A DNA stretch of 64,000 nt, from positions 18,301,292 through 18,365,291 of the forward strand of contig OZ316898.1 in assembly GCA_973895155.1 (NCBI GenBank). Reading direction: 5' to 3'. A model generated the notes under the pieces. It ran no database searches. It was given only the letters and a program-made list of their open reading frames with translations, and was not told the DNA's origin. The DNA comes from Marsupella aquatica. Lineage: Eukaryota > Plantae > Marchantiophyta. Numbering within the stretch: position 1 is the first letter of the stretch; each line of letters begins with the position of its first letter. Position numbers and translations under genes: made by a program. Of this stretch, positions 142 to 42,430 are shown in pieces.

Positions 142-2019
142 CTATCCGGCCAATTCAGCAATACGGTTTGCCCAGGGATTCACGCCAAGGTGCTCCAAGG
201 GTCGGTCAGTTTCATTTCTGAGGCGAATGACCTCCGGAGAAGAGAGAGACTGGTGTTGGAATCCCATGAACGCCAACACCTGGTTGTCGGCGAAGTTCAA
301 AGCTCTGTCGATGCCCTTCATGCAGGTCTTGGCCCCTGGAGTGTCGTCATCGGAGTGATGGCAAGGACCGCAGCCGGTGAAGTGTGTGATCCATGGCCAG
401 CGGTGGTTCCCCAGCCCCGGATGATATTTCTCCATGAGTTCTTCAAAAGTGTCCACAATCGGAACCCACCATCCGCTGATCATGTATTCGGGCGAGTCCA
501 CGAGCTTTACCTTCGCCTTGACAGCCTTATCGGTGATCATCAGATACGCAAGAGCGGACTGGTCATCGGCCGACCACTCGTTCCTGCCTTTGAGAACTCC
601 TGACAAAACTTGGCCGTATGCATCTCTAGCTGGGCCCCGAGGTCCCATGGGGGACCACTTGTCAATCAGATCGAGGGTCCATTGACAGTTCCGGATCATG
701 AAGACGCCAGCATTGTAAGAGGTCCAATGTTTTTCCTCGTAAAAGTAATCGTTGATACCCCACATGATCATGTTGTAGCCATCATAGGTCTTCCAAGGGG
801 CTTCGAAGATCATGTCTGTGAAAATCGCATCGCTGTCGAGCCAGAAGAACCATTCGATCTCTGGATGAGCAAGCATGAGCGTCCGGATCGTTGGGAGCTT
901 GACCCAGAAGCTGTCAAACAAAGGATCCAGCCAAACGAGATTGTAGTAGATCTCGTAGTCGTGCATCCGGGCGTAGTCCATCTTGAGCTTAAGAGATTTG
1001 ATGTGAAAACTGTCTCCCTGAGAACCATGGCATGGTCCCGGCTGGGATCCTGTCACGATGAGAACCCGTGGCTTTCCTTCTGGTGTTGTTCTCATTTTGG
1101 GGTTCGCACTCAACCAGCGTTCACGCTGCACATCCCAATCTTTTATGGTTGGACCGAGTAAGTAGGGCTCAGGGAAGACGAAAGGTTCGTCCTTCTTCTC
1201 CTCCTCCGCAGCGTTTTTTTGCACTTCAGCTGAATTCTCGTTCTGCCTCTGCTGCTGCTCCTTCTCAGTCTTTGCTTCCTCCGTCTCCTCGATTTTTCCG
1301 TCATTGGACACCTGTGGCTCCTCTTGAGATTCCCGTTTCTCTTTTAATATCTTTTGCTCATTCAACTCCTGCGCAGCGATCTTCAACTTCTCTACGTCCT
1401 CATGCTCATTCTCGTGGTCCCTTTCCTTGTGTCCCTGTAAGTGCAAACTTTGTTATTGATCAGATAAGAGGTGTCAAGAATTAAATTTCTCCCAAAAATA
1501 TTAGCAATCATCTTATCCTAGTGCAGGTTCAAGCAATGGGCGGGACGTTGCAAAAATAACTGAATCGGACTCTACGGATCAATTACATAGACGGATCGAA
1601 GATTAGTAGAGGTTGTTTGAAATTCGAGCCCCGTTTCGTAGTTTCTCGAGAAAGCAGACTTTTGACTCGTTACTGTCGTGTCCTCAGAAGTCACTACAGT
1701 AATTAAGGATCATTCTAGAGCTGAGATGTACGCACGTATTTTTTTTTTCGGACATTCCATTCATACAGATGGATGATCCCATCCTTAATTACAAATTCCT
1801 TACCTGCATGAGATTACGGGAAGCGAATTGCTCATGGTTGAGTAGTTGTCGATACCCGGCTATGGATCCTTCAAGTTTCGTCGTGTCTGGAGTCATCCTT
1901 CTCCCGTTATAATAATGCGTAGTCGCTGCATCGGTGGGAACCGCGTTGAGCTGGCTGAGGACTGTGCAGACCAGCAATCCGATCTGCAAGATGTTGTGGC
2001 CGCTCGCTAAACCCCTCAT
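142..2019 (-). CDS. GT34 family glycosyltransferase (xyloglucan xylosyltransferase / galactomannan galactosyltransferase-like), two exons: complement(join(142..1434,1804..2019))
   Basis: GT34 motifs VLIVTGSQP, KMDYARMH, FWVKLP, WFFWLDSDA (DxD), NAGVFMIRNCQW, DQSAL, HFTGC, RALNFADNQVL. Exon 1 encodes a hydrophobic anchor/signal segment ending at CAG|GTAAGG; acceptor TTACAG|GGA; both phase 0. Confidence 0.92.
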
Positions 2020-4328: not shown

Positions 4329-5805
4329 CTCAGCAGTCCTTAGTTCTAACGCCCACACAGCTTGAATCTCATCATCATATCATCATTGTCACTTCTAAAA
4401 CTTTCCACTTCATTACTTCATTGTAGTTTCTTTGTTTTTAGTTCTTTTGTTGTTGTGGACTCCTTCTTTGTTTTTTTGTTCCTTTGTTGTTGTTGTGGAG
4501 TACTCCTTGGCTTTGCTGGACCTTTTTGGTCTTTCTTGGGGCCTTTTCCAGTTCCTATTCCTTCCTCTTTATTGGATTGATTTGTCTATGGACCCTGTCT
4601 CCCCGCCTGGTGTTGTTATCCTTTGGCACTTTGATATACTTACTTGATGTGAAAATGAAGTAAGGGAGTTTTCATTTTAAGGAAGTGGGTGAATGGAAGC
4701 AACTAGGGACTAAGTCAGGAAGTAATTATTTTTAAAAAAGCCACATGTCATCAAACCCAAAGACTGTATTCACAATAGCAAACCCATGATCATCTAATTG
4801 GGCATCTAATCCACAAGTAGCTGACATAAATAGAAACACGATTGATGTTCACCTCAGCTGAGATTAAATCCACATGAACACACGAGAGCTTTAATATTGC
4901 ACTCTAGGCCCGTCAGCGATGCCAAGTCTTTGCAACACAAGCTCTCCCTATATATCCCTCAACTAGCTTTGTAACAATGAGCATGAGTTTCTTGTATCTA
5001 AGCAAACACTTCTTGGGATATAGTGTACGTGTAACATGCATGACTAACATATTAACCAAGTCCATGATTACGGTTAGCCCCGGGGTTAGCCCTAACTATG
5101 GTTACAATCATGATCCTAGACTAGAGTCAAATGGGAGATTGTTATGCATTTACACTTAAGTCTAGGGTTATGAATGTAACCATGGTGAGAAAAGTATCAA
5201 GGCGAGGCAATAAAATATAATTTTTGCAATGAATGTAGTTATTAAGACATGTTATGTGTGATCCTGGCCATACAATTGTTATGGCTGTGTTCAAGGCATT
5301 GCAGATAGAAGTTTTGGAAACGCTAGATAGTGACCACCGCATCATCGAGTCCAAACACAACCAAGTGATAAGAGTATAAATAGTTTATATTTTATTCATA
5401 TTCAAAGTTTTTCAAATATTTTTTCCAATTTTTTAAATGTAAATTTAAATAAATCACCCTATTCATTAAAACTGGAATTTCTCTAGTCCAAAAGTTGACC
5501 TTCAAATTTATTATTTTACCCCCAAAAATTCTATAACTTGTTCCCCAAAAGCATACAATTTAGTGGCCAAATATACACTTTTTGAGGTCTAAAATTACAA
5601 CTCTAATGCCCAAATTATTAATTAAATAATTCAGTTATCAATTATAAATACTTATTAATTAAAAGATAATAAAGTGTTCTTATCACTGGTGGTCGAACCG
5701 TAAGTACTTTTAGACCATCTATTTTGCGTGTTGTAGCAAATTCCTCCCCACTATTTTGTATAACAAATTTAGACTGCCATCCATGCTAGTATACACCGCG
5801 TAGTT

Positions 5806-6797
5806 CTAGCAAATGTTCTGACATGGTATTAAGCAAGCTAGTTGCAGGTATTGGACTGTATGCAAATGAATAGGACGAACAGACTTGTCAGAACGAACAA
5901 GTAAAAGACGAACATCTCCGTAACCTGGTGAGACTGTTGAGCCCGCTCCAGTGTTGATCGTGAGTGGATCATCCACGTAGTTCTCCAAAGTATCACGATT
6001 GTTACAGAAATGGTGGTCCGCGCCCGAATCAGAAATCCACGTAGCTGGTGTTAGATGATCTGTAGCATCTGAGTGAACTTGATGCGAGTATTGAGCGAAG
6101 GTAAAAACATCACGAAGCGGAGAAGTCAATCTAGTTGGTTGACTAGAGGTAGATGCTTGAACTTGCATTGTTCCTTTCAATCGTTCTTGAATCCATTGCA
6201 TTACGATGGTATTTGGTTGCCATCCAGGCCGACGAAGATGGACATGTTTATAAAAACACATGTCATCTTTGTGATTGGAGAAGTGGCAAAATGAACACTT
6301 CGGAGTGGGTACAGAAGAACGTGACTGTGAGGACTGAGCTTGTGTCTGCAATCGAGACACATTTAATTGAAGCGTTGGCTGTTCTCGTTCTTGTTGACTT
6401 CACCACTCATCCTTGGCCTCTTGAAGAACCAGATCTAAAGACGGTGTGTGCAATGGATCTCGACGCATCTGGTTGCGAATGTTTGGAGCCCAGTGCTGAA
6501 AATTCGGATGTGGATCAAGAATGAACAAGAACTGCATAATCTAAACCTCAGGATCAATGGTGATTCCCGCAATGATATATACAACGATCAACTGCATCCA
6601 AATATCGACCAGAAAATGCTTCCATCTCCTCACCTTGATACTGCAATTTGACGAAATGTCGCCAATAGTCATGTTTCTGTACGATTCCTCGTGGTTGAAA
6701 TTGTTGTTGCAACTTCTCCCAACATGCTTTCGTTGTAAGCAAATGTGTCAGACTAGTCTGGACATGAGGCTTACAAGAAGACAGGATAATCATCCAA
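5806..6797 (-). pseudogene. Ty1/Copia gag 3' part, zinc knuckle and aspartic protease remnant
   Basis: MIILSSCKPHVQ...CWEKLQQQF (gag), CSFCHFSNHKDDMC (CCHC knuckle), WISDSGADHHFCNN (Copia protease); frameshifted; no integrase/RT downstream. Confidence 0.85.
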
Positions 6798-6799
6798 AA

Positions 6800-6832
6800 C
6801 ACAGTGACGGACCAAACGAGAAGTGTGACCAC
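6800..6832 (+). repeat. Left TIR CACAGTGACGGACCAAACGAGAAGTGTGACCAC
   Basis: Reverse complement of 18783-18815 with 2 transition mismatches. Confidence 0.93.
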
Positions 6833-7145
6833 ACTTCTCGTTTTGCCCGCGGCGAAAAAAGTTTCTAAGGCAAAAAAGTCTTGGATACGGAATTAGTATT
6901 CCCACTAAAAACTAGTTTTTCAAATTGAAAAAATGGGAAAAATTGACACAAATACGAAGATGGGATACGGCATATCCCATTTCGGATCCAACCGAGGAAT
7001 TCCAAAAACAAAAAAACCAAACGCAGTAAAAGTGCCGATATTGGTTTACCCGAAAAGAATATTCCAAAATGATTCTTCTCAACGGTAACATTTAACCGAC
7101 TACGATGCAACTGCAGTCAAATACTAACCACGGTCAGTGAGAAAA

Positions 7146-7158
7146 CTATAAATAGGAG
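7146..7158 (+). promoter_or_regulatory. TATA box (CTATAAATAGGAG) for the first cargo transcription unit
   Basis: Canonical TATA ~140 bp upstream of ATG 7290; nearly the same motif recurs at 8644. Confidence 0.45.
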
Positions 7159-7289
7159 ATCACCGCTTGAGAATTTTACGCTCATTTTTTCTCGTTCAAC
7201 TGAACTGTACGCACTAAAGCTCTTGCTGCCTTTCAGTGACCGACACCCACTCAAGCTTAAGCTTTCCTTGAAAAACAAAGTTTTCTCTT

Positions 7290-7625
7290 ATGAGTCTAAT
7301 GGCGGTCCAGAATCAAAACCTTGAGAAACGTGCTCGTCGATTGTATAAGCGATTAGTTGCACTCAAAGTTCTTCGTCCTGGATTAGGCGCGCTATGGACG
7401 GGAGGCGTGGATCCACATGATAGTTTGAATCCACTCCGAATAGAGTTTTGTGAAAAAAATGAGGATGGAGTTCCGATTCGGTCGAGGATATGTTTGAGTG
7501 GTTGTCTGCACTCTATTAATTCTTCTTGTAACTATTGTCGTGATGCCCAAAACAAATATCATCGATTGGCATATTTTTGTTGTCGGATTTGGAACGAAGA
7601 TCCTTGGGTTAACTTATCGCGTTGA
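7290..7625 (+). CDS. Small Cys-rich hypothetical ORF inside the transposon
   Basis: 111-aa ATG ORF downstream of a TATA box; several Cys/His (CLSGCLH..CNYC..H..FCC); no recognisable family. Confidence 0.3.
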   Translation: MSLMAVQNQNLEKRARRLYKRLVALKVLRPGLGALWTGGVDPHDSLNPLRIEFCEKNEDGVPIRSRICLSGCLHSINSSCNYCRDAQNKYHRLAYFCCRIWNEDPWVNLSR

Positions 7626-7801
7626 ATTTTCTTGATTAGTGTGTAAGTGTTTAGGTGAACGTTCTTGGGTCAAACATTTTGTGAATATATTTTTCTTTTG
7701 ATCAAAGAAATAAAATCAGTTTTTCCATCACTGTTTTATAGGTTGCTGAGAAAGAGCTCACCATCTCATTTATTACTCCAGGTATCCACTCTTATTTTGG
7801 A

Positions 7802-8353
7802 ATGGCAGTCACTGAGAACCCTGTCTTTACAAGGTTAGCGATGTCATTCGACAAAGAGAAGAAACAAATTCAACAAAAAAGTGGCCAAAGGGAATCCAGA
7901 TTGCTTTTGGATGGACTTCCTAACGAGATTGTTGAAACGTTCATTTGGCCCATTTTGAAAGTTTGTTGTATAGAGGATGAGTTTGATTCCTCCAAGAACC
8001 AAGCTGATGAGAGATTGATGCGATTAAAAACCATGGTGTGGCTTGGATGCACCTCCAAGAAATGGAACCAGCTCGTAATTTGTACATGAGTCTGGGGTAT
8101 TCTTAGACTAGCAAAAAGCCAGCTTGAGGAAGTAAATGAAATGCTGACAAGCATTCCCGATGGAAAACCCCTTTAGAATGTTCATATTGAAGCTTTTGTT
8201 AGGATGGAAACACCGAATCTTCCTCCAATCGATTTCTTAGGTTTATTTTCAAGGTCTGACCTAAATCGATTTCAAGAAGACTGGCACAATCTTGAGAAAG
8301 ATGAGCAAGCGAGGCTCTTGGAAATGTATGGGGAAGCTTCTAGTCTGGTTTAG
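7802..8353 (+). pseudogene. F-box-like protein gene (transposon cargo), interrupted by in-frame stops
   Basis: LLLDGLPNEIVETFIWPIL...LGCTSKKWNQLV resembles the F-box LPxEI..V(S/C)KxW pattern; frame continues past TGA 8087 and TAG 8174. Confidence 0.5.
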
Positions 8354-8643
8354 AGCCATCTTGAATGGGCTCTTTGTAAAGACTCTTTTTAAGAATATTA
8401 ACTTAGTTTATTTTGTGGCACAATTCCGAATGAATAAAGAGTTTTGTGATTACCCTTGCATCAACCCGATTCGCTACGCGTAAAATCTATTTGGTTGAAT
8501 ACAAGGACTTGGGGATATGCCTTATCTCTAGTCCCATCAAGAGAAAAAAGTATACATAGACATCCAGACTCCAACCCTACGCTTTTGGATACACATTATC
8601 GCCTGTGGAAACCTTATCGCCTGTGGATACGAAGGTGATAAAG

Positions 8644-8655
8644 TATAAATAGGAG
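8644..8655 (+). promoter_or_regulatory. TATA box (TATAAATAGGAG) for the ParB-MTase gene
   Basis: Followed by a pyrimidine-rich leader, a putative 5'UTR intron (GT ~8779 to CAG 9242) and ATG 9247. Confidence 0.45.
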
Positions 8656-8819
8656 TGCTTGCTCAGAAAAATTACTCTCATTTCTTTTTCTTCTCAACTT
8701 TGTTTGCCTCCGCGTTTTTCTCGGGCCGCAACATCTCTATAGCTTTTCGTATTTGCTCGAATCAAAAGCAAAAAATAGGTAAAAATTGAAGAAACTCTCC
8801 CCTCCTCGTTTGGTTAATT

Positions 8820-9205
8820 GTTGAATCCTAAGAGGGATACGCTGTATCCCCCTTTGTATTCAACTCTATTATTTGGCCTTCTTTTCAATGTTGAATACGA
8901 GATGGGATACCGCGTACCCCATCTCGCATTGAACACCCTCTTTTTAGTCTTCCATACAAACCTCCTCGCTTTTTCTTGACTTTGAATACAAACTGGGATA
9001 CCGCGTATCCCATTTCGCTTTCAAGTCCCTCTTTTTTGTTAATTGCATCAGACTCTGGACATTTGTTGTTGTTGGATGCAAAATGGGATACCGCGTATCC
9101 CATTTTGCATTCAACTCCCTCTTTTTTGTTCTTTGCATCAAACTTGGCAATTGTTGATGTTGGATGCAAAGTGGGATACCGCGTATCCCATCTCGCATTC
9201 AACTA
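8820..9205. repeat. Tandem array (~90-bp period) of palindrome TGGGATAC-N3-GTATCCCA, in putative 5'UTR intron
   Basis: Cores at ~8834, 8903, 8994, 9084, 9173. Confidence 0.85.
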
Positions 9206-9246
9206 CTTTTGGTCTGGTTCTGAGTGTGTCAATCTTTTTCAGGATC

Positions 9247-12200
9247 ATGTCAAACAAATCAAAGTCGTCTGGTTCGACCCAGTCTTCACGGACATCCATC
9301 ATCGATGAGATTTGGAAGAAAGACCTTTACATGGAGGAGAAACTTGTGAGGAATAGGTGGTACTTCAGGGATGCTCGGGCGATGGATATTCATAGAGCCT
9401 ATGAAGGTCCAACGGTGTGGTTGGTTATAGTTAAGGGTAAAGACCATTGTCATTATGGATTAGTCGTGGACACCGGGGAGGCGGATATCACCGACTCAAA
9501 AACAAAATAGCTGAAGAAGATTCCAATGTACCTTTGCATTCTTCCGAACAATGCCTTCACTGTAGTTGTCCTCAACTACGAGAAACTTGATCGGGTCTCG
9601 ATGAACATATTTCCTGATGACCCGATCTGCCAGCTAATTTTGGAAGTGCCGGAGATAGAGGACTTTTCTTATTGGTGTTTGAAATTTGTCTTAAAGTCTT
9701 GGAGGGTTGTTGAGGATTTTACAAAGGTAGCGTATAGGTCCGTTGTTGGAGCCGACTTTGGCGTCAAAGAGCGGCCTTTGAAGTTGAAAGTGACAAAGCC
9801 TACCGATCCGGCTTTGAAATCAAGGGAGATGTCTGGAACACCCTCGACAAAGGAGAAATCTGCCACAGTTTCTTTTAAGGAACCGGCAAAGAGGAAGCTT
9901 GCAGATCAACTCTCTGGGGAAGGTTCTAAAGTAGCGGTGTCAAGAGAAGCTATTGTCAAGAAGAAATTGGATCGACGTGACATCCAGAAACGCGCGTCTT
10001 CTGCACCAGGAAGTGTTGTCTCATCTTTGGTCCCACCAATTTCACAGACACCTTCTCAGATTCCTTCAACTTTGTCAGGTGGGCCTTCATCTAGGGGAGC
10101 TGTTAAAGAAAAGAAAAATGATTCAACAGATATCACCACAACTTTGCAGCGGGAAGAGACACTTGTAGTTCGTGAAGAAGTGTCTCGATTGATGGAGACT
10201 AAGCGATTTTAGAAGACAACAGTTATTCTGAAAACAACTAACCTGCTTCTTGTTGACAATATTGACGACGAGAACTCAACGTTGCTTTGAACAGTCGATC
10301 GGTTGCATGTGGAGAACATCAAGACTTTGATAAAAATGAATCCGACAAATTTCATGACGCCATTTATCTTGTTTGTGATCCCCGAAGACTGCCCGACAGT
10401 GACAGACTGGGACCCAAAAAAGGCAACAAGCTGGAGATATCGAGAGATTGGAGGTAATCACGGTGCTCGGGCTAAGAGAGAATTGTATCAGGCTTATGGG
10501 AGAGAGATCTTCAATGAACTCCAAGCTTGGGTGTATGCTGGTCTCACAAGGGAGGACATTCAGAAACTTAGCATCCAACATAATATTGATCAGGAGTACA
10601 GGAAAAAAATGAACATTGATCAAATCCGAACAATGCATAAGATTTTCCTTGCCAGAGGAATGGCAAAAACCAAGGAGACTAGAGAAGCGTGTGCAATGGA
10701 GGTTTGCCTCGACGGGTTTTTTCCGGGGGACGCCACAAGCCTGAAGAAGCATGAGCCTCTCTTCCAAATTGCGTTTAGGTCGGGTAAAGTCTGGGAACTC
10801 CAAGACCAGATCTTTGAGATGTGGAACAAGTTGGAGATCAAAGGGCAGAATAAGCAGAAGTCACTGATCAAGAAACTCAAGAAAGAAAGGGAAAAGCGCA
10901 GTCAATTCCAAAAGCTTTGAATAAGCTTGCAGGGGGCCTTACCTTGACACCTTGGAGAGCAATCCAGGGAATTGAACACGACCAATTTTTGGAGTCCCTT
11001 CTTCTCCGAGTTAAGGACCGGATGATCTCTTTGGAGCAGATGGCAAAAGAAGCCGAGAGTTACAAGAAACTTGTGAAAATCAGCAAGCTTTTTGTTCAGT
11101 TGTCAGGGCAGAAAGACTGGGCGACTTGCAAACAAATGTTTTTGAAAGAAACAAAATCTGCCAAGCTTGAAAGATGGAGTGGGAAATTGTCCGATGTGGT
11201 ATGTTCTCCCCTTCCACTGATTGGACTTTTCTATTTGTTTTGCCATGTTCAGAGGTTTTCTTGGATTTCTTGTTGGAATGCGAAGTGGGATACAGGGTAT
11301 CCCATCTCGGATTCACTTGTGCTTATTTGATGTTGGTGATGTTTCAATGCGGTTTTTTCTTGGTTGAATGCCAAGTGGGATACACGGTATCCCATCTCGT
11401 ATTCACTTGTGGTTATTTGATGTTTGTGAAGTTTCACTGTGGTTTTTGCTTGGTTGAATTTGAAGTGGGATATGCGGTATCCCATCTCGTATTCAATGTG
11501 GTTATTTGACGTTTGTGATGTTTCAATGTGGTTTTTGCTTGGTCGAGTGCGAAGTGGGATACGGGGTATCTCATCTCGGATTCACTTTATGGTTATTTGA
11601 CGGTGGTGATGTTTGACTGTGGTTTTTGCTTGGTTGAATACGAACTAGGATACGGAGTATCCCATGTCGCATTCGTCGTCCAGATTTGATTGTTTGAATT
11701 CCTAAATGGTTATCTTCCCATTGTCTTTCCTCCAGATTCTTTTAACAAGTATGCGTTTGCAGTTGAAAGCTTTTTTGAAGAAGAAGAACAAGGATGCAAT
11801 TGGTGCCGATGCGGTTGAGAAGCCTACGGAGGAGCTGACTTCGAGTGTTATTCCCCCGGGGTTTAAGAATTATGTTCAAGAAGCGATTGAGAACTACAAC
11901 CATCGTCGTGGGATTGAAACGGTTGAAGCAAAGTCGAGTGACCATCGATGGAAAAACGCTGACAGAAATTTTATCAGATATACATTGCATTGTGGAGATG
12001 TCAGGGCGCTGGATAAGTTTGTAGAGAAAAGGAATTACACACTTGCAATTGCAGACATTCCTTATGGATTCAATGCGCCTGGCTCTGAAAATGATGAGGT
12101 CCCATTTTCAGAGAGTGATATTGTGGATATGGTGAATTGTTTTGCCAAGGTGACAAGTTCAAAGATGTGGAGGTTTGTTGTGATTCACTCTTTGCAGCAA

Positions 12201-12875
12201 ACTTGGTCTGTGATGAATGCTTTTGGAAAAACTTGTAACGCAGGTGTAGAGGCTGGAATTTGGGAGAAGCCAAATGTACATGCTCATCCTTCCGGGAATC
12301 GATTGGCTTGGGCTTTTGAAAACTGGTCAATCGGATATTATCACGAGTGGTATTAGGACCAGAGACATGTACAATTTTGAACATGATGAGAAAAGGGTAA
12401 ACATCATAAAAGTCTCTTGTGTTACAAAGAAATGTGTAACACCATTGGGAGAAATAGTGAACCCTTACTAGAAACCGATAGCTTTAGCAGATTGGTTCAA
12501 TTCGTTCAACATTTTAGTGAAGCAGGGGATTGGGTTGCTAATTTATGTGTGGGGAGTGGTTTGACCTCATGCGCTGCCTTGTTAGGGAATCGTCCGATGA
12601 CAGCTGTGGAGCTCAGTGCAAGCCAGGTGGATTGTATCCGGACCCGACTTGTCACGCTTGATGAATCGTGGGACTTGAATGATGAAGCAACCGAGGAGGG
12701 TACAGGACCCATGAGCTTTGAGGTTCAACCACCTATTGGTGGTACTACGAGCACCCTCACCACTGGAACTTGCATTATTACAACCGCGGAGGAGAACGAC
12801 AATGATGAGGATGAAGAGGATGAAGTGGAACATGAAGCTCCGGCACTTGATCTTGGCTCATTCCTTGAGGTGTAG
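9247..12875 (+). pseudogene. ParB/Srx-like domain + beta-class N6A/N4C DNA methyltransferase gene (intron 11199-11735), disrupted
   Basis: YREIGGNHGARA (ParB/Srx-like GxHR-type motif); LHCGDV...LAIADIPYG (motif IV, DPPY-like); NPY*KP (HPTQKP-like); GDWVANLCVGSGLTSCAALLGNR..AVEL (SAM-binding motif I, after motif IV = beta order). Stops at 9508, 10210, 12469 and frameshifts near 10890, 12345, 12500. Confidence 0.82.
11270..11675. repeat. Second tandem array (5 units, ~90-bp period) of the same palindrome, inside intron 11199-11735
   Basis: Cores at ~11287, 11377, 11467, 11556, 11647; intron has GTATGT donor and CTCCAG acceptor in phase 0. Confidence 0.87.
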
Positions 12876-12987
12876 ACTTAAGTTTGATTAGTTCTCTCAT
12901 GTTGTATCTATTGATCCAAACTTGTGAAATATTGAGGAAGATTATGATTGGACTATGTTCTTATTTCACAAAGTAATATCTTTGCAG

Positions 12988-13926
12988 GAACCACAGGAGG
13001 ATTTTGTATTGAAACATGTTCTGCATAGATTCTCACACAATCCTTCTAGTGGATTTCTTTTGGACAATAAAACATTGAGCCAACTTGAACCCGGTCAATA
13101 TTTGGGTGATGAAATAATGGAATTTTACCCACAATTAATAACCGAGGAACATGGAGATCTGGCTCCCTCAGTAAACACATTATCTTCTTTTTTTTACCCT
13201 TGGCTTGTTTCAAGGATTGAAACAGAACTAGCTGAGACCTTGTTGGAATCAATTCAAAAGATGCGGAATTATTACAAGCCACCATTTTCCCAAATTGAGG
13301 TCATTCTCATGCCAATTCACATGAGCATGCACTGGAGTCTGGTTGTAATATGTTTGGATCGGATTGAATCTTCGATCAAAATGTATCATCTAGACTCTCT
13401 CGCCGGTCTACACTCAACCCATGTAATTGGATCAATACTGAGCAGGTACGTATATATTCTATTACATTTTTTCAATTTGAATTTATTTATGTGGTACATA
13501 AATATAAACACTTTGGACTAAGAACTTTGAATGATAATTTGCAGATATTTTACAATGGAATGAGAATTATTTTTTGGAAAAGTTCCAATGAGAGTTGTGG
13601 AGATATACAATCCAATGGTAAGGATTTGAAAAGTTATTTCAACTTTTATTTAGTTCAATTATTAAACACTTTAAACCCTAAACCCTAAACCCTAAACCCT
13701 AAACCCTAACTTTAAGATTCTTTCTCAGGTACCTCAACAACCAAACAATTCAGATTGTGGTCTATTTGTTCTTCAAAATATGGGCGAAATCAGAATTCAA
13801 TGGCATATTACACAATGCCTTGATGCACAGTCTTTATTTACTGAATAGTACAATTGTAAAAGAGCATGTAACCTTAGAAAATTCATTCGAGATCAAATTC
13901 TAAAATTGATGCATGTACCTGTTTAA
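12988..13926 (+). pseudogene. Ulp1/C48 SUMO-protease domain, exons 12988-13445, 13544-13617, 13729-13926
   Basis: LEPGQYLGDEIMEFY, LSSFFY, ILMPIHMSMHWSLVVI (His), YHLDSL (Asp), VPQQPNNSDCGLFVL (oxyanion Gln + catalytic Cys) after splicing; internal stops (TGA in exon 2, TAG 13846). Confidence 0.85.
13672..13709. repeat. Interstitial telomeric repeat (TAAACCC)x5 in the Ulp1 intron
   Basis: Perfect plant-type TTTAGGG repeats on the minus strand. Confidence 0.9.
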
Positions 13927-13937
13927 GAACATCAATC

Positions 13938-16900
13938 TCAATCCTTTGAGTGTGCACAACCTCTCTCTAATATAGCAAACTCTATAATTTTTTTAGTTTT
14001 TGCTGCTATTTGATTAGTACTTAAAAGCGCAAAGTTGTATGCATACACCGCTGTTGATGATAGAACTAGTTCATCTTGGAGAAGTCGATTAGATATATTA
14101 TCTTTCTCTGGAAAATATTTCCCATCAATAGCAGACTCAGCACTTGCCTCAGTTGTGTACCATGTGATTTTGATTCTCTCAGGAATGTTTGCAGTTCTTG
14201 TCAAAATCTTTGACACCTTTGCCATCCAAAACAACTTGCCTTCTAGATCCTTGTGTGCCACTACACATATCATGGACCACTTATTGTTAACTTCCATATC
14301 TCTGAAATCTCCAAATTCAGCTTGCTTTCGTCGAGGTCCGGAGTACATAATTCTCTGTGGTCCAGCAACTTTATCAACCAAAGTTGGATCAACACCTTCT
14401 TCAACAAGTTCATTTCTCACCCTTGGAAGTAGTTGTGCACCTTGATTTTGTTGCGGCCAAACCCACTCAAATAACCACTCACCTTCCTCTAGGTGGTTTT
14501 TGATAATATCTTTTTGTTTCTCAAAAAAACTCATCCACCAAAGTTTATCTTCATTGTTAAAGTAATTGAAACCTTCCTGGATAGCTTTTTCATATTTCAC
14601 CATAGTAGTTAATGCACCATCTGTATTGGAAGAATCATGGACATCATCCCTCTCAACACCTTTTGCTGACTTCAGTGACATTTGTGCAGCAACCCACATT
14701 CTTGAAGTTGGAATGTAATTGATGAACGTCATTGCATCTCCCCAATCCTGGGTCGTGGAAAGATGTTTCCCATGAAATGTTGTCTCTTTGTTTCCATCCT
14801 CCATGACTCGTTTGAATCTGAATTGTCTTTGAAAAGTTATGAGATTGAAATCTCTCAAGACTCTACCTGAGACTCCCTTCTCATTTGGCTGGTCGTTTTC
14901 ATTGACAAATTTTCAAAAATCGGCTACTTCATCCACAAATATGATCAAAGCTTCAGGTGAATATGCTCGTCGAATAATATCCTCAAGAGTCTCCAAGCGA
15001 AATGCTTTGTGCTTGTTTAACCTAGACGAAAATTTACTAAACATCTGATCTATCTAGTCATGTGTATGACCGACCAACAAGAAACCCACTTTAATCTTGT
15101 CAAAAATCTTCAAATCTACTAACATGTGAAGATAAGCCATCAAGAATTTATTCTTGTTTTCCCGAGTGGTATTATCTAATTGAAGATATAACACTCTTGG
15201 TAATGTCCCATCCCATGTATTCAATATATTTTGAATAACATGTATGGTCAAGTTTGCATCATTATGGATATTGGGATATGTCAAAAATACTTTTGCTACA
15301 AGGTTCCTGTTGAAGATGAGACAACCTACAACATGTATTGGAATGAAATACTTTTCATCCATGTTCTTTGGACAACGAAGAAAATGTGGTAGCTCTGTTT
15401 TCTTTTGATCCATACCATCTATACAAATACCCAAATACTTGTTGGGCTCATCATAGCATTTTTTACGATGCTTGGCTAACTTCATCCTTTCCAATGATTG
15501 TACTTTTCGATGCTCCATAAGGGCATTGATATACTTTCCTGAAATGATACAATAGCAATGAATTAAAAATCAATAACTAAGGATAAACTTTGACAAATAT
15601 TGAATTACATGTCATCAAATTAAAGTTGAAGGTTATAGTTAGTGGAACTTACTTTTATACTCTTCAGTTGTTGCTTTGTCCCGAAGAGCCTTGAATTCAG
15701 TACAAGGACCACAAGTAGAAAATCGACTCCTTTTAGGAATTCGTACATTTGGAAACTTTTTTTTCCAAACACGCAAAAAATAAGAATATGTAACTTGTTG
15801 TTCTTCTCGCAACATTGTTTCAGCTTCAAAGATTCCATGTATCTCTTGCTTTGTCCAATTGTCTGGCAAGTGATGAATCTCTTTATGGGGAAGACTATCC
15901 ATATTTTTTTGGAAAAAATCTTTCAACCATTCCACCAAGTTTAGAAATAAAGGTGAGTCTTCCTTACAAAAGGTATCTCGTTCAATCCTTGTAAACATGT
16001 TTGCATGGATTGTTGCCAATCTATTATTACCTAAAGAATATAGTTTCTTGAATCCTCCTCTACATATAGGTTGTCCATTTACACTATATCCACGAGAAGT
16101 ACTACAGTTGTTCATGATACAACCTCGTAGCAAAATATTTTTTTGCAAGTGTTTAAGACCAAAATAATACTTGCGTTGTTTTGAGCATTCCTCTAGACCC
16201 AGAGACCTCAAGCAAAACTTGTCACAACAGGGATACTTAAAAATATCTTTAATTTTGCGTTTTTTTAGATTTGCAATGGTAAGTCTATCTTTTCTAATCA
16301 TCTGATCTCTGATTTTCTTGCTGGGTCTTGTCACCTCTACTCTATCCTGAATAGTGTCGGGAGAACTTACCCCCCACTATTTTCTAGTGAATTAGAATTT
16401 AAAACAAAAAGATCTTCTGTAGAGTTGTTTCCACTCTCCACATTTTCTGTAACTGTTTCATGAACAATCTCACATCCCAGGATCTCTTCAACAACATTTG
16501 AGATTACAGCAGTCTCTCTGTCATTTGCAGCCTCCTCTGATCTCTCTTTAGAGTCTTCTGAAAATGTAATAGGTGTTCGGAGATTTCTAGTTTGAAATCT
16601 TCTAATGATATTCACATCTTCAGTCGGAGTACCGCCCACTTGTCTCTGAGACTGTAATCCCAGCCTAGGTGATTCTTCTCGACTTGAGGGCTCATCTTGA
16701 CCATTGAATAATCTTTGGACAAGTTTCAATTTAGCATGTACCCTTGAATTTTCGGGCCCTCTCTCTGGCAGCTCACTTCGCAATAATCTCCGAGGAATTT
16801 TTTGGACACTAGATCTCTTCCCTCTTTTGTTTTGCACTTGCCGTCCAATGGAAGATCCAAAAACCTCACACTGCATCCTCACCAAAGGGCTTCGAAGTCC

Positions 16901-17763
16901 CATGTTGTTAGTTTTACCACTCTGTGAAATAACTGATGGGAATATTGATTGGGATCCCTGGATCCCAACTCGTATTCGTCCTTCGGGACTTCGAAGTGAA
17001 AACTTTCCCACTTGCTGTTTTGTGTCATGACTTGGTAATTTTCCGTTGCGCAATACGAACTGGGATCCGCAATACGAAGTCCGCAAGACCGGTGACTCGG
17101 GCACAAGATTCTACAAAATAACACGAGGGAATACTAAGTGGGATCCATGGATCCCACTTTGTATTTGACCCAAGGAATTTGGTACTGAAGGAGATAAAAT
17201 AGGTAATTTGCGTTCACCGTTTCTCAACATTCAAGTAGGGAATACTAAGTTATTCGACCCACCAAATTTGGCTCCGAGGCTGCCCCTCCCTGCAATTCCG
17301 GCACATTTGGACTTCTCATTCGCTCAAACTGTGATTGAACACTGGACACAGCTATCTTCACTCCCGGAGAATGAGACATTGGAAAAACCAACGGAGATCT
17401 TCGGGCGGGCCTACATGGTAATGTTGTTCTTGGCATTAAAAACCGGGGCCTTCGCCTTTGAAGATCTGTCGGGGTTCGCGGTGAACCAAGTGTCTCTGTC
17501 GTAGGAACTACATTAGGCTTCTTTACAAGTAGACATCGTTTAAGAGGTTTACTTGGAGAGACATAGTATGAAATCGGAGCACCCACAACACTCCTACAAG
17601 ACTCTAACTCTGACTTCTCAGATTCTGAGGAAAATGAAATCTTTGGCACTACTCTCTGTGAGGCTGGTAATTCATTCATCAAACGAGATGGAATAAATTT
17701 TCGAACAACATCTGGCAAAGATGCATCTGAACTGTAAATTGACTCATCACTTGAAGACGCCAT
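13938..17763 (-). pseudogene. DDD-type transposase (Sola-like), multi-segment and disrupted; intron 15539-15652
   Basis: CCDKFC, ICRGGF, RFSTCGPC..H (Zn motifs), ICIDGMDQKKTELPHF, LYLQLDNTTRENKN, FLLVGHTHD*IDQMFS; long Ser/Arg-rich N-terminal region; stops at 15054 (TAG) and ~14912 (TGA), frameshift in G-run ~16370. Superfamily assignment tentative. Confidence 0.8.
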
Positions 17764-17910
17764 AGAGAATCAAACAAGGGTTGTATAGGAGTACGTATTC
17801 CTATCCAACAGAGAAAATTCAGATTACAGTATTCTATGAAAACAACTACTCAATACTGAACGAACCTCAAAGTAATCGCAAGAAATGAAGATGAAAAACA
17901 GATGCGAGCT

Positions 17911-17985
17911 CTTCCTTTTATAGTTTTCGGGGGCATTGGACACGTGGCATTCCCTGATTGGTCCGTACGAGGGTTTTTTCACGTG
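17911..17985 (-). promoter_or_regulatory. Putative transposase promoter: TATA (CTATAAAAGG on minus strand), CCAAT and two CACGTG boxes
   Basis: ~150-220 bp upstream of ATG 17763. Confidence 0.4.
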
Positions 17986-18782
17986 AGAGTCTGTCTTTTC
18001 AAAGAATGCTGAAATTCAAATCGTAGATTTTTGAGGAAGTCGCCGTGGATCCCAGTTGGTCTTCAAACTAGAATATCAAGGTATGCGATGCAAAAACTTC
18101 AAAATGTAGAGGTTGAATACTAAATGGGATCCATGGATCTCAGTTGGTATTCATGTCGAAAGATCTCCTGATGCAAAGTTGCAAGTGGAAAACATTGAGG
18201 TTGAATACAATAGTGGATACTTGGATCCCATCTCGTATTCATCATGCGTTATGGGCTAAAAAGTTTCCGGACATGTCGTCGGGTTAACTTAACTAACTGT
18301 GTGGTTCGACTGTAGTCCGCAGTCAGCTTTTCGTAGTTTTCAATTTTACCGCAGTTAAAAATTCAAACATTTTTAACCTGAGATTAAATGGAAGCGTCAA
18401 GAGAATGATTTGGTGTGGTTTTCGTCCATGTTCAATAGTTGAATCCGAAATGGGATACGCCGTATCCCATTTTCAGTTTGCCATTTTGATGGCGAAAATG
18501 AAATCTTGTGTTTTACTCGTTTTGTTTGACGCTCGGATTTAGCTTTTAGAAGGATCACGTGAAAAGCATTGTTTTTCCAGGTTTTGGAATTTGCACTTTT
18601 TTTAGATGAAGTGTATCGGAATTTTGGATTGTGACAATTCTGTGTTTTTGCATCAACAATATCTCGATTTGAAATCCAATGTTGGATGCGATTTTGGATT
18701 CATCCTCAAAATAGCATTTTTGATCTTAATTTTAGTGATTTTTCGCCGTTTTTCGCAAAATTGAAAACACACTTCTCGTTTG

Positions 18783-18815
18783 GTGGTCATACTTCTCATT
18801 TGGTCCGTCACTGTG
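18783..18815 (-). repeat. Right TIR of the 12-kb transposon
   Basis: GTGGTCATACTTCTCATTTGGTCCGTCACTGTG, inverted match to 6800-6832. Confidence 0.93.
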
Positions 18816-18817
18816 TT

Positions 18818-19040
18818 CCGAGCTAACGCTGCTTGAGAATCGTAAGCTTCAAGCCTAGCCGTGAAGTGGTAATCCTTCTCATCAGTTTCCTTCACAGGCG
18901 GTGTAGCAGTTCCATCAATAAACTTCCACGAGCCTGATGATTGAAGGCCGGCGGAGACAAGCATTTTCCACAAGTCATAATTGACTCCTCCTTCCAGCTT
19001 TGGAATTGAGTGTGTAGAATCGCCAAAAAGGATTCGACAT
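18818..19040 (-). pseudogene. Ty1/Copia gag N-terminal part
   Basis: IPKLEGGVNYDLWKMLVSAGLQSSGSWKFIDGT...AALAR, a typical Copia gag start; continues at 6797 after the insertion. Confidence 0.8.
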
Positions 19041-19131
19041 TGTAAAAATTGATGAAAATTTGTATAAAGAAAGAACGGAGCTGAGTATCTTAGTCAGCGT
19101 GTAGTGCAAGCGCAGTCTATAGAATTAACTA

Positions 19132-19408: not shown

Positions 19409-20882
19409 CCTGGAACGGATAGACAATTTGACGAGCACCAAAACAAAAAGGTAAACTTTCACAAGTACCATGGACGCGGTAACTTCGGAATTTCCAGACC
19501 CGGCTCTTTTTGTAGTTCTACTTCTGGATCCCCCAACAGGGACTCCTTGTCTCGCCTTAAATTGAGTGTACTTTCTTTGATTCATCCAGTGAAGCCTCAT
19601 TAGAAATATCATGATCATCCCATGCGTCCATGAAATGCCTCCTATAGACTGCAAAGCATGTTGGGTCGACTGGCAGTCCCTGTTTCTGCCACCTTTCTTT
19701 GACTGATGTCATATTTAACTCTTTTGATCCCTGCGTGCAGCCATGCATGGCGTAGAAAAGCAATTGCTCGTAGACAAACACGAAGTTCAAGATGCAAGTC
19801 CGCAATGGCAGGTTCTTGTCACTAGTAAGCTCTAGGGTTACGATAATTGTAAAGCGAAAGATTTTTTACCGAAAGACATGTCAACATATTAAAGTACAAC
19901 AAATAGCGTTCGATAATTGAAACTAGAAAATGCTGTTCGAAGGGAGAAAAAAAATACACAAAGATGATAGCTAGATATGATAGTCAAATCTTGAACACTT
20001 ACTGTAGTCCACTGCAATCGTGCAGACGAATATCAAGAAAGTTGAACAGACATACTGGGGACCCTAGCCTGCCATTCCATCCCAGATGAATTGTCAATGA
20101 ATATGATAAAACGCATGACATGATAGTACAAAGTACCCAAACCTGCAAATCAACACGTCCTGCCTACAGAACTGATTCACCCTATGTGAGTGAACGCAGG
20201 AAGATTAAGCTTTGTTGACTGATTCCTGCGGGTATCGGGTTCAAAGGGGCCGCAAAAAGAAATCCCATTGCAACTAAGAAAGGATATGATAGAACACTTT
20301 GTCCAGGACACACTAGAAACTGCGTAAGGGTTGAGCGGTCACCATGAGGATCCAACGGGCTGTCTCAACACGGATTGCCAGACGACACAGCATGATGGAT
20401 GGACTGATTGACCGACGGAATGATTGTCAACAATGGCTGGCCACCATTGCCCATTGATCGAGTGAGACAACAGCGGCATGCCAGACCGACACCTTACCAA
20501 GCTCGCACAGTACGACGTCAAAATGATTTGTCTGCAATATCCGTGTAGAAATCGTCCATGCCATATTGAGCCGATCCAATTCTGTAACCACTAAGTTGGC
20601 TATGAAACTCAAGAATCCCTGCGTGCAGAAATCAAAACCAAGTTATCCTAGTCAACTCCACAATATTCAAAATTTTGCATGTACTAAGAGGCCCTTTGAA
20701 TGACCAAACTACTGTAGACAACTCTGGCATGAGCATTTGGAAAGCCAGATGGGACATTTGCAACAGAAATGTGTTGACCTCACCCCAACATAATACACCG
20801 TCTTAAGACCCTCACACATTGCGGCTGCTGGTAGTTTGCGTTGTTTTTTGAACTCGTTGTTGATAATTGACGTTTCTTCATT

Positions 20883-21251: not shown

Positions 21252-22827
21252 CATTTTTTGGTGTTCCGTCATACGTAGTACTTTCCGTGAATGTTCTTGA
21301 CAAAAGTTTCAATTCTCTCAATCTCCTATGGAAGGGCATGGGCGCTGTATTGCACTATTTTGCCTCAAAAAAACCATTGAATTAAAAAGCCAGCATACAA
21401 AGTGAGCTAAGAGTATCCCATGACCTTGATCACTCTCTTGACTCAAGTGTTCTGCAACAAGTACATTCCTAAATTTCTTTATTCCTTTGCTTACTATTTG
21501 TTTTCACTCTATTTCTTCCTAAGATTGGTAACAAAGTAGAGTACTCTTTCCGAGTGTTTGTTTTCACTCTATTTTTTATAAGGATTGATTTTATTCTTTT
21601 AAAGGAAAGACACATGGTGAAACTCTCCAACAACACAAGGCAACCAGTATTCTTTTTCTAGATCCTCTTTCTTTCTAGCACTCCTAACAACTTCAATTTC
21701 TTTTTAAGAAAGGACACATATATGGCCAAGTTCCTCCAACAAAAGTTGCAACCCAACTGTTTGTATAGAGGGGTGAGGGGTTTCTGTTTTCTTGGGAAAG
21801 TAGCTTTTTTCTTTAATGGTCTAAAATTATTTTTAGCCTATGATAATAAGGTGTTTAGGGTTGGTTATTGTCTATTCACCCTAGCCCCTCCCACACTGCA
21901 TTTATTTTGGAGAGGTGGGGATTGAATTTCATGGCAAATTTCATGGCCCACCATTAAATTGGTTCTCCCATTTTTTAGACATTTATATATAGGTCATTCA
22001 TTTTATATCTCCTTCCTCTGCCCCCTATGGCTTATTTTGCTTCCCCATTAGTCAAACTTCTGCCCTTTGTGCCTGGTTGGGTTGGACCTATGAGCTCTCC
22101 CCCTTGGCGGCTTTCATCCTCTGGTTGTGTTCTGGGCTCCAGCCCCGCCTTTTTCAAAAGGAGAAATTAAAAGAATCAAACTTCTGCCCTTGCCACGGTC
22201 TATATATTTTGATGTTTTTTTACCATCTTCTTCATCAACAATGTGGAACCAAATTAAAGCAAGATTTTCAAGACTGCAACAACATTTTCAACTGAAAACA
22301 TTTCCGTGCATCACCACTTTTGCTTGAAAAAGATTTACACTCAATTATATTTCTCAGCAAAGTTTTTGTTTGACAATACTTTTAAATCTACTATTCGAAT
22401 ACAATCATCTCGCAACCACAACACTTTTTCTTGGAAACAATTTCTCTCAACAACACTTCCTCTTAGAGGCATTGACCCATTTTGAAACTTCCGTGCATCA
22501 CCACTTTTGTTTGAAAAATATTTCCACTCAACTATATTTCTCAGCAAAGTTTTTGTTTGACGGTACTTTTAAATCTAATATTTGAATACAATCATCTCGC
22601 AACCACAACACTTTCTCTTGAAAACACTTCCTCTCAACGACATTGACCCAAAGGCAGCGACAACTTCTGTTGATATGCCCAATGGTTGTTGGCAGTATTG
22701 AGCCTCACCTTGACAATGTTGCCTCAGACCCTGGCCACATCTTTGCCTCATCTTTACATCTAAACTTGCCTTCTGGATTTTGGCCTTGCCTCGACATCTT
22801 TGTATCATCTTAACATCTACACTTTCC

Positions 22828-41449: not shown

Positions 41450-42430
41450 ACAATAGCAAACCCATGATCATCTAATTGGGCATCTAATGCACAAGTAGCT
41501 GACATAAATAGATATAGGATTGAACACCTCAGCTGGGATTACATCCACATGAACACATGAGAGCTTTATTACACTCTAGGCACGTCAGCGATGCCTATAT
41601 ATCCCTCAACTACTCGGGGGTCTCACTATATGGATGTCTCCCCATCCCCTGCGACGTTTTTAGGCCTCAGACCCCCTAAAATGTAAGAAAAAAATAATTA
41701 TTTTTCAACCCCTATAAAGTTGGAATATTCTTGGAATATTCCAAAAATTTGGTTAGAAAGACCCTAATGTTCTTGTAAATCTCAAAATTGAATTTAAAGT
41801 ACCCTATTGTTCTTCTACAAAAATTCTTAAGTCTTCCCTTCAAACCAATAAATTGACCCTATACTTCGTCGCACGTGATGTGCCATTTTTGTGGAAGTGA
41901 AACGCCCGAGCTCAACTAGCTTCGTAACAATGAGCATGAGTTTCTTGTATCCAAGCAAACACTACTTTGGATACAATGTGTAACATGACTAACATATTAA
42001 CCAAGCCCATGGCTACGGTTAGCCTTACTATGGTTACAATCATGACCCTAGACTGGAGTCAAATGGGAGATTGTTAGGTATTTACAGTTAAGTCTAGGGT
42101 TATGAATGTAACCATAGTTAGGACTGACCCTAGTTTCAAACTAGATTAGGTTAGTGATGCTTCACACTATATCCCAAGCAGTGTTTAATTTGCTTGGATA
42201 GGAGGAACTGAGGCTTATTGTTACGGAGCTAGTTGAGAGATAGGGACTCGGATAGGGGACGTTGTATTGCAAAACTCGGTATGGCTGACGCACCTAGAGT
42301 GCAAAAAATCCGGGAGAATAGCTCTTGTATGTCTAGTGGACATCGGTAACACAATCAGTAACCCCAACTGAGGTGAACCACATATCTCTCCATGTTGACT
42401 ACTTGTGCATTGGATGATCATGGGCAATCA
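41450..42430. mobile_element. Old fold-back / long-inverted-repeat element
   Basis: Arms such as CTCAACTAGCTTCGTAACAAT / ATTGTTACGGAGCTAGTTGAG and CCCATGATCATC / GATGATCATGGG; right arm missing from copy A; boundaries approximate. Confidence 0.55.
41613..41910. mobile_element. MITE (same family as 22828-23121), 8-bp TSD CTCAACTA
   Basis: TIR CTCGGG...CCCGAG; empty site in copy A (~4958). Confidence 0.9.

Follow-up and report, generated by a model that had tools for sequence, protein, structure and literature searches.

We analysed a 64-kb stretch of the genome of the liverwort Marsupella aquatica (contig OZ316898.1, positions 18,301,292 to 18,365,291; the whole stretch of 64,000 nucleotides is called the window here). 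It contains a 12,020-bp DNA transposon at positions 6798-18817, bounded by terminal inverted repeats (TIRs). On its minus strand the element carries a DDD transposase gene that, by its sequence, is of the Sola1 type. On the opposite strand is an accessory gene for a ParB-like domain and a DNA amino-methyltransferase (the ParB-methylase), probably fused at its C-terminus to a SUMO protease of the Ulp1/C48 family. Palindromes found nowhere else in the window are arrayed in and around this gene. The copy is dead and lies in what appears to be a Copia-type gag-pol fragment.

Ends, host site and transposase

The TIRs are 35 nt long when the outermost bases, AA and TT, are included. The left repeat is at 6798-6832 (plus strand, starting AACACAGTGACGG) and the right repeat at 18783-18817 (minus strand); the arms are 94% complementary over the 35 nt, with 2 mismatches. 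The 33-bp TIRs reported in the original prediction, which had been made from the sequence alone, were recovered as an inner version at 6800-6832 and 18783-18815, beginning with CACAGTG. Across the 64 kb, the terminal 17-mer is found at two places only, one at each end of the element, and no second copy of the element was found in the window. The proposed target site duplication is 4 bp long, with the sequences CCAA at 6794-6797 and CCGA at 18818-18821, which are identical at 3 of 4 bases and have A in the last position.

The sequences on either side appear to be two halves of a single minus-strand gene fragment. The left part (5809-6797) contains the downstream half of a split gag frame followed by a match to Pol_BBD, the Pol beta-barrel domain characteristic of Copia polyproteins (29.2 bits, above the Pfam cut-off), and the right part (18822-19093) contains the upstream half of the frame with a weak match to Retrotran_gag_3 (E value 0.0044, under its Pfam cut-off). 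Because of these two matches, we take the insertion host to be a Copia-type gag-pol fragment. No integrase or reverse transcriptase was found among the open reading frames (ORFs) tested further down the host minus strand. When the element is excised together with 2, 5 or 8 extra bases, the junction is again spanned by an open frame of ~172 aa on the minus strand. The 8-base option corresponds to excision of the element with one copy of the 4-bp duplication, and restores the host frame. The earlier claim that the 12-kb unit splits a Copia gag and was inserted as one piece is therefore upheld by the recovered frame and the two flanking domains.

The transposase gene is on the minus strand, as originally predicted, and its type can now be named. 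The ORF at 15057-15569 matches the Pfam family DUF7869 at 4.8e-32. The catalytic and C-terminal part extends over 13941-15569, and from 15548 to 13971 it aligns in one frame with the database relatives P0001, P0004, P0005 and P0007, at 57-61% identity. Since the relatives align in a single frame, this part most likely corresponds to one exon, as it does in them. The N-terminal region, with a Cys-rich motif, is at 15642-16376 and was recognized by tblastn matches to the transposase genes of three related loci (L001, L004 and L005, described below).

Three catalytic blocks of the window transposase, DGMDQ, QLDNTTRENKN and VGHTHD*IDQ, correspond to blocks of the curated element Sola1-1_Ec32 of the brown alga Ectocarpus; the blocks were matched by eye, with no scored alignment. 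Block 1 reads MDGANQSNFVVP in Sola1-1_Ec32 and IDGMDQKKTELP in the window (core MDGANQ...VP versus IDGMDQ...LP). Block 2 reads VQVDNTVAENKNNYLM in Sola1-1_Ec32 and LQLDNTTRENKNKFLM in the window (core QVDNTVAENKNNYLM versus QLDNTTRENKNKFLM). Block 3 reads FMMVGHTHIQIDQIFS in Sola1-1_Ec32 and FLLVGHTHD*IDQMFS in the window. The ends are also alike: AACA in the window element, AACA in a relative from the liverwort Riccia sorocarpa and AACCG in the Ectocarpus element. Sola elements have DDD transposases and 4-bp target duplications. Judged on these sequence features, the transposase is a Sola1-type DDD enzyme, neither a Transib transposase nor one of unknown type.

Upstream of the transposase core are two further long minus-strand open frames (16370-17110 and 17248-17769), for which neither Pfam nor the related loci gave a match. 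They may represent a low-complexity extension of the N-terminus or a spurious reading.

The accessory gene

The accessory gene starts with a region at 10291-10917 (plus strand) that, from homology and an AlphaFold model, is assigned a ParB/sulfiredoxin-fold domain and, after it, a helical domain that may bind DNA and has the motif IGGNHGARA. A linker domain exon at 10887-11201, conserved in homologues, comes next in a different frame. The ORF at 10291-10917 is homologous to the N-terminal part of methylase proteins from Chara, Ginkgo and Adiantum, and the ORF at 10854-11327 to their middle part. Because these ORFs match parts of the same homologous proteins, the ParB-like domain, the linker and the methylase form one conserved architecture.

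Evidence for the ParB-like fold comes mainly from the predicted structure. A model built with a 27-sequence alignment had a predicted local distance difference test score (pLDDT) of 82.9; it replaced an earlier model from 11 sequences with a pLDDT of 57, for which the fold search was meaningless. In a Foldseek search with the newer model, the first 14 listed rows (to rank 20) were all ParB, Noc, Spo0J, KorB or PadC, with weak E values of 0.08-0.45, and KorB appeared again at rank 23. Structural alignment of model residues 1-105 with VIA-align gave Z scores of 7.0-7.7 for ParB, Noc and PadC, with a root mean square deviation of 2.3-3.0 Å over 75-79 residues; for the N-domains of ParB alone, Z was 7.3-7.7 and the deviation 2.3-2.7 Å. 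In an independent fold pass over 48,161 chains, Z was at least 5 in six chains, all of them ParB/sulfiredoxin-fold proteins. The Atlas neighbours of the ORF are phage clusters, some with ParB_N, which we treat as a lead only. Sequence searches did not detect the domain. Pfam ParB_N was found neither in the window ORF nor in 10 homologues at an E value of 5, and searches of the Protein Data Bank (PDB) with profiles never reached ParB. The motif GGNHGARA is nearer to the sulfiredoxin type (GGCHR) than to the GERR box of ParB. We conclude that the N-terminal part of 10291-10917 is predicted to adopt a ParB/sulfiredoxin fold, with Z scores that are middling.

The methyltransferase domain is at 11706-12869 (plus strand) and is assigned to the beta-class N6/N4 amino-methyltransferases, with motif IV (DIPYG) at ~12054 and motif I (VGSGLT) at ~12550. 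Its first ORF (11706-12353) has 100 representative homologues, with E values down to 1e-63, including proteins from Chara braunii, Ginkgo, Adiantum and Riccia sorocarpa. Homologues P0028 (65.7 bits), P0030 (39.9) and P0051 (33.0) exceed the gathering score of Pfam N6_N4_Mtase. When compared to the PDB, the profile of the family matched DpnA (E value 0.0016) and CcrM, and one homologue matched phage methylases by tblastn. The motifs are in the order IV then I, and the S-adenosylmethionine-binding GxG motif is present.

The methyltransferase-like domain might be a pseudo-enzyme. The protein would then be only a DNA-binding scaffold, delivering Ulp1 in this lineage, and DNA would not be methylated. 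The first proline of motif IV is absent: the window has DIPY in place of the canonical DPPY, a six-frame search found no DPPY-type motif in any frame, and the window ORFs fail Pfam. However, the variant motif is a property of the family. D[IVAFL]PY is present in 59 of 91 aligned homologue segments (33 with DIPY alone), usually followed by G, and D-x-P-Y-G is kept across ~100 representatives, from Chara to ferns. In addition, motif I in relatives is a canonical LDxxSGSGT, including the acidic residue, and is degenerate (ANLCVGSGLT) in the window copy. Some amino-methyltransferases are active with N-I/L-P-Y (Erm, KsgA) or D-L-P-Y-G (THUMP-type) as their motif, and D-x-P-Y-G is thus compatible with catalysis. 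A dead domain is not expected to retain both motifs. The family retains both hallmarks and its sequences are compatible with catalysis; we therefore regard a pseudo-enzyme as the less probable reading, and one that has to be taken seriously.

The Ulp1/C48 protease, as originally predicted, is present in two plus-strand exons. The first part (12988-13518) contains the catalytic His (~13330) and Asp (~13393) and matches Pfam Peptidase_C48 over profile positions 1-120 (1.2e-12, 48.6 bits). An exon at 13696-13845 with the QQ...DCG motif (Cys codon ~13756) matches profile positions 157-179 (1.4e-05, 25.5 bits); the cut-off is 20.7 bits for both. The motifs HW, DSL and QQ...DCG provide the catalytic His, Asp, Gln and Cys, all of which are present. 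A putative phase-0 intron of 118 nt (GT...AG, 12870-12987, plus strand), read from the sequence, would join the methylase to Ulp1, and Ulp1 is probably a C-terminal fusion to the ParB-methylase protein. Exons were searched singly, and no spliced or joined protein model was used.

Both genes of this copy are broken. The transposase has two in-frame stops (15054-15056 and 14913-14915), and the methylase has four within 12354-12389. Between the ParB-like domain and the linker there is a frameshift: the frame of the match switches between positions 10848 and 10887, in a region that is one ORF in relatives. The window copy is dead. Thus, the plus-strand ORFs do lie between the TIRs, as first described, and what the element holds are pseudogenes. 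The predicted module of a ParB-like domain and an amino-methyltransferase was recovered through the Pfam N6_N4_Mtase matches of homologues and the AlphaFold fold, and not through any direct Pfam or PDB sequence match of the window ORFs.

The F-box-like protein of the original prediction was not confirmed. The ORF at 7742-8086 (plus strand) contains an F-box-like motif (LPNEIV ... KKWNQLV), and both the domain call and its status as a real gene are unsupported. It matched no Pfam family even at an E value of 10, had no homologue and no tblastx match to related loci, and reached F-box clusters of the Atlas only at 0.76-0.79, with all scores under 0.85.

Related loci and palindrome arrays

Four other contigs, independent of the window, also have a Sola1 (DUF7869) transposase gene next to a ParB-methylase gene: L001 (Riccia sorocarpa), L004 (an ENA scaffold), L005 (a JGI contig) and L007 (a Logan contig). 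Because the two genes are neighbours in all four, the ParB-methylase gene is cargo of the family rather than a one-off capture. Identity to the window is 82% for the transposase core and 54% for the methylase in L007, 77% and 58% in L004, 46% and 34% in L005, and 46% and 32% in L001. The ranking is broadly parallel for both genes; L004 and L007 swap rank, yet both are far nearer to the window than are L001 and L005. These parallel identities fit long co-descent of the two genes, not repeated capture.

The tail-to-tail layout of the two genes in the window is also found in L004 and L007, where the stop codon of the methylase is separated from that of the transposase by 360 nt and 140 nt, respectively. 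Because only these short distances separate the two stop codons, L004 and L007 leave no space for Ulp1 and lack it. Neither Ulp1 nor the F-box-like ORF was found in any of the relatives' loci examined. Based on these sequence comparisons, we consider the ParB-methylase gene the core cargo and Ulp1 a later, lineage-specific addition. In tblastx comparisons with the related loci, neither the left 2.7 kb nor the right 1.7 kb of the window element had a match, and the Riccia locus lacks the terminal 17-mer of this element.

The Riccia locus contains a complete-looking 9.6-kb Sola1 element (L001:2730-12314) with TIRs of roughly 34-37 nt, an annotated 903-aa DUF7869 gene and a ParB-methylase gene. 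Its ends are AACAGCCGC...GCGGCTTTT, and it is flanked by a perfect 4-bp duplication (TGTT/TGTT), which settles the 4-bp duplication rule for this lineage.

The window element contains 15 palindromes, 12 of the type GGGATAC-N3-GTATCCC and 3 shorter variants. None occur in the other 52 kb of the window, and none are expected by chance. There is one subterminal palindrome of the main type near each end (6961-6979, 164 nt from the left end, and 18451-18469, 348 nt from the right end). Array A (8833-9190) is upstream of the ParB-like exon and has five units, the last four ~90 bp apart. Array B (11286-11664), between the linker and methylase exons, has five units that are ~90 bp apart throughout. 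The shorter variant, GGGATCC-N2-GGATCCC, occurs three times within 16950-18142 (at 16950, 17139 and 18125).

Each lineage has its own palindrome. The motif is CACCCCATGCGWCGCATGGGGTG in L001 (near both ends and inside the gene), AGCGATACNGGTATCGCT in L003 (five copies), GCGATACCGGTATCGC in L004, CGTATATCGCTATCGG in L005 (upstream of the gene) and GCGATACTGGTCTCG in L008. In the closer relatives the core is GATAC-N3-GTATC, as in the window, and the flanks differ. Co-evolution of a DNA-binding domain with its site would be expected to leave such a pattern, which is indirect evidence. Of the six lineages with arrays, five (the window, L001, L003, L004 and L008) have an array between the ParB/linker and methylase exons, and this position within the gene fits ParB-parS-like self-recognition.

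The palindromes might instead be subterminal and internal repeats bound by the transposase, as in CACTA, Mutator and hAT elements, with the ParB-methylase acting elsewhere or without sequence specificity. Repeats of that kind usually sit near the ends, and there is indeed one palindrome ~160-370 nt from each end of the window element and ~250-350 nt from each end of the Riccia element. However, most copies belong to two phased arrays that lie well away from either end. The array between the ParB/linker and methylase exons, in five lineages, mirrors the clustering of bacterial parS at parB, and a published case from a red alga likewise ties a ParB-domain gene to adjacent inverted-repeat arrays. 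We consider it rather unlikely that transposase binding explains the palindromes.

Several other observations concern the related loci and the surroundings of the element. The Chara loci L002 and L006 have a ParB-methylase gene and no Sola1 transposase within the DNA examined. In L006 (Chara braunii, P0016), an 1825-aa gene model over 29.5 kb (L006:10001-39538) includes a tandem pair of ParB-like plus methylase units; within 49.5 kb, no match to a Sola1 transposase was found. L008 has three tandem 69-nt units (L008:2-208) within an ORF upstream of the ParB gene. L001 also contains inverted repeats of ~105 nt (20131-20235 and 21729-21832; 96-97% identity, 1.5 kb apart) that look like an unrelated short element. 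In the window, the nearest Pfam-identified gene on the strand of the Copia-type fragment is a GT34 host gene at 145-1452 (minus strand), ~4 kb from the fragment, with an intact 436-aa ORF (Pfam Glyco_transf_34, 5.7e-46). Window positions 5000-5452 and 41953-43363 are 81-85% identical in DNA sequence; they are an unrelated dispersed repeat, possibly the long terminal repeat of the host retroelement.

A land-plant variant of a known design

We conclude that the feature is likely a dead, autonomous-type Sola1 transposon with a ParB-methylase(-Ulp1) accessory gene and its own palindromes, inserted in a Copia-type gag-pol fragment. Several points weigh against parts of this conclusion. The target duplication of the window copy matches at only 3 of 4 bases, and the transposase was compared to Sola1-1_Ec32 by eye. 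The window ParB-like and methylase ORFs had no match in any direct single-sequence Pfam or PDB search. The fold match to ParB is middling (Z ~7), and the CTP-binding GERR box (GERRxR) is absent from the ParB-like domain. Motif IV of the methylase is DIPY instead of the canonical DPPY, and N replaces the conserved D before motif I in the window copy. Finally, transposase binding could account equally well for the subterminal palindromes.

The closest known system is the Sola1 element of Ectocarpus. This 21.5-kb element has an accessory gene, opposite the transposase strand, that encodes a ParB-like domain and an N4/N6 DNA methyltransferase (PMC12477816, Genome Biol 2025). Its authors propose that the accessory protein binds and epigenetically modifies the element's own sequence (PMC12477816). 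For Sola1-1_Ec32, the termini are given as AACCG and the target duplication as 4 bp long, with a bias towards A as the last base (PMC12477816 supplement). The window element shares the three catalytic blocks, the AAC ends, a (here proposed) 4-bp duplication ending in A and the opposite-strand ParB and methylase gene. It differs in its host, a liverwort rather than a brown alga, and in size, 12 kb with 35-nt TIRs versus 21.5 kb with 282-bp TIRs. Neither a Ulp1 domain nor palindrome arrays have been reported for Sola1-1_Ec32, and the accessory genes are likened here by domain content.

Other systems share some of these features. In the red alga Bostrychia, Plavaka (CACTA/EnSpm) elements carry the accessory genes PAG2 and PAG3, and ParB-domain accessory proteins are encoded beside inverted-repeat arrays (bioRxiv 10.1101/2025.02.11.637652). 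The tandem inverted-repeat arrays next to the gene are alike, as is the proposal that the protein binds and modifies its own element. However, Plavaka belongs to another superfamily, its ParB domain is fused to a 2-oxoglutarate (2OG) oxygenase, and its N6-adenine methylase is in a separate protein with a SET domain. ParB-domain/beta-class DNA methyltransferases of phages and plasmids (DpnA, CcrM and M.MboIIA type) also have motif IV before motif I and an SGSGT-type motif I. The best PDB profile matches of the window family are DpnA, CcrM and M.MboIIA, phage methylases were matched by tblastn, and phage clusters of the Atlas are nearest to the ParB part. Unlike the phage and plasmid enzymes, the gene described here is predicted to contain introns and is in a eukaryotic transposon, it has DxPYG rather than DPPY, and its ParB part lacks GERR. 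Lastly, plant Mutator (KI-MULE) and CACTA elements carry Ulp1 passengers, and in them, as here, a C48 domain with H, D, Q and C is found inside a DNA transposon. In contrast to those passengers, the Ulp1 domain here is carried by Sola1, is probably a C-terminal fusion to the ParB-methylase, and is absent from the closest relatives.

A 2016 survey of eukaryotic adenine methylases (BioEssays) found ParB-linked clades only in algae and chytrids, with no streptophyte clade of this type. Our literature search found no report of a Sola1 ParB-methylase package in land plants, nor of a Ulp1 fusion. The window element is a land-plant variant of the published Sola1 ParB-methylase design, and its variant features are the probable Ulp1 fusion and the lineage-specific palindrome arrays.

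The original prediction went further and proposed an undescribed plant family in which the F-box, methylase and Ulp1 genes have co-evolved as a single anti-silencing toolkit and move together. All of the ORFs are indeed within one pair of inverted repeats and the ParB-methylase gene is family-wide, and the predicted large, cargo-carrying family was borne out, with transposases of this type neighbouring a ParB-methylase in Riccia sorocarpa and three other contigs. However, the family is Sola1, and similar cargo had already been published for Ectocarpus (PMC12477816). The expected co-occurrence of transposase, methyltransferase and Ulp1 held for the first two in four contigs, and the two closest relatives lack Ulp1. 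The F-box-like ORF has neither a domain match nor a homologue. In place of a toolkit, there is one conserved accessory gene with lineage-specific additions, in a dead copy, and we consider the proposal very unlikely. A Transib/RAG-like element, a reading suggested by the recombination signal sequence (RSS)-like heptamer CACAGTG at both ends, is almost certainly wrong, since a transposase of the DUF7869/Sola1 type, not RAG1-like, already refutes it, the 5-bp flanks differ (CAAAA versus TTCCG), and the repeats reach two bases further out (AACACAGTG), resembling the AACA/AACC ends of other Sola1 elements.

We postulate that the ParB-like domain binds the element's own palindromes, much as ParB binds parS. 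Through this binding the methylase, in this lineage along with the SUMO protease, would be tethered to element copies. The tethered enzymes could mark the copies, shield them from silencing, or help build the transposition complex. Recognition of the palindromes by the ParB-like domain, and the tethering that would follow from it, is a tentative proposal to which we give somewhat less than an even chance. A bolder version, in which streptophyte Sola1 elements (in Chara, liverworts, ferns and Ginkgo) carry a working ParB/parS-like self-recognition system that brings an active N6-methyladenine or N4-methylcytosine (6mA/4mC) methylase, and here a SUMO protease, to their own copies, seems to us improbable. 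If true, it would mean that a land plant has a transposon-written DNA mark, other than 5-methylcytosine (5mC), that counters host silencing.

So far, algae are the only organisms from which transposons that pair a ParB-like DNA binder with a DNA-modifying enzyme have been described. The loci analysed here extend the Sola1 and ParB-methylase package to land plants and charophytes, and the package is linked across a transposase divergence from ~80% down to 46% identity. The palindrome that accompanies the package differs from lineage to lineage, and in one of them a SUMO protease has been added. The dead copy in the window contributes its anatomy only. Together with its relatives, the locus provides a concrete, testable pair of protein and DNA site with which to ask if transposons in eukaryotes place marks on their own DNA.

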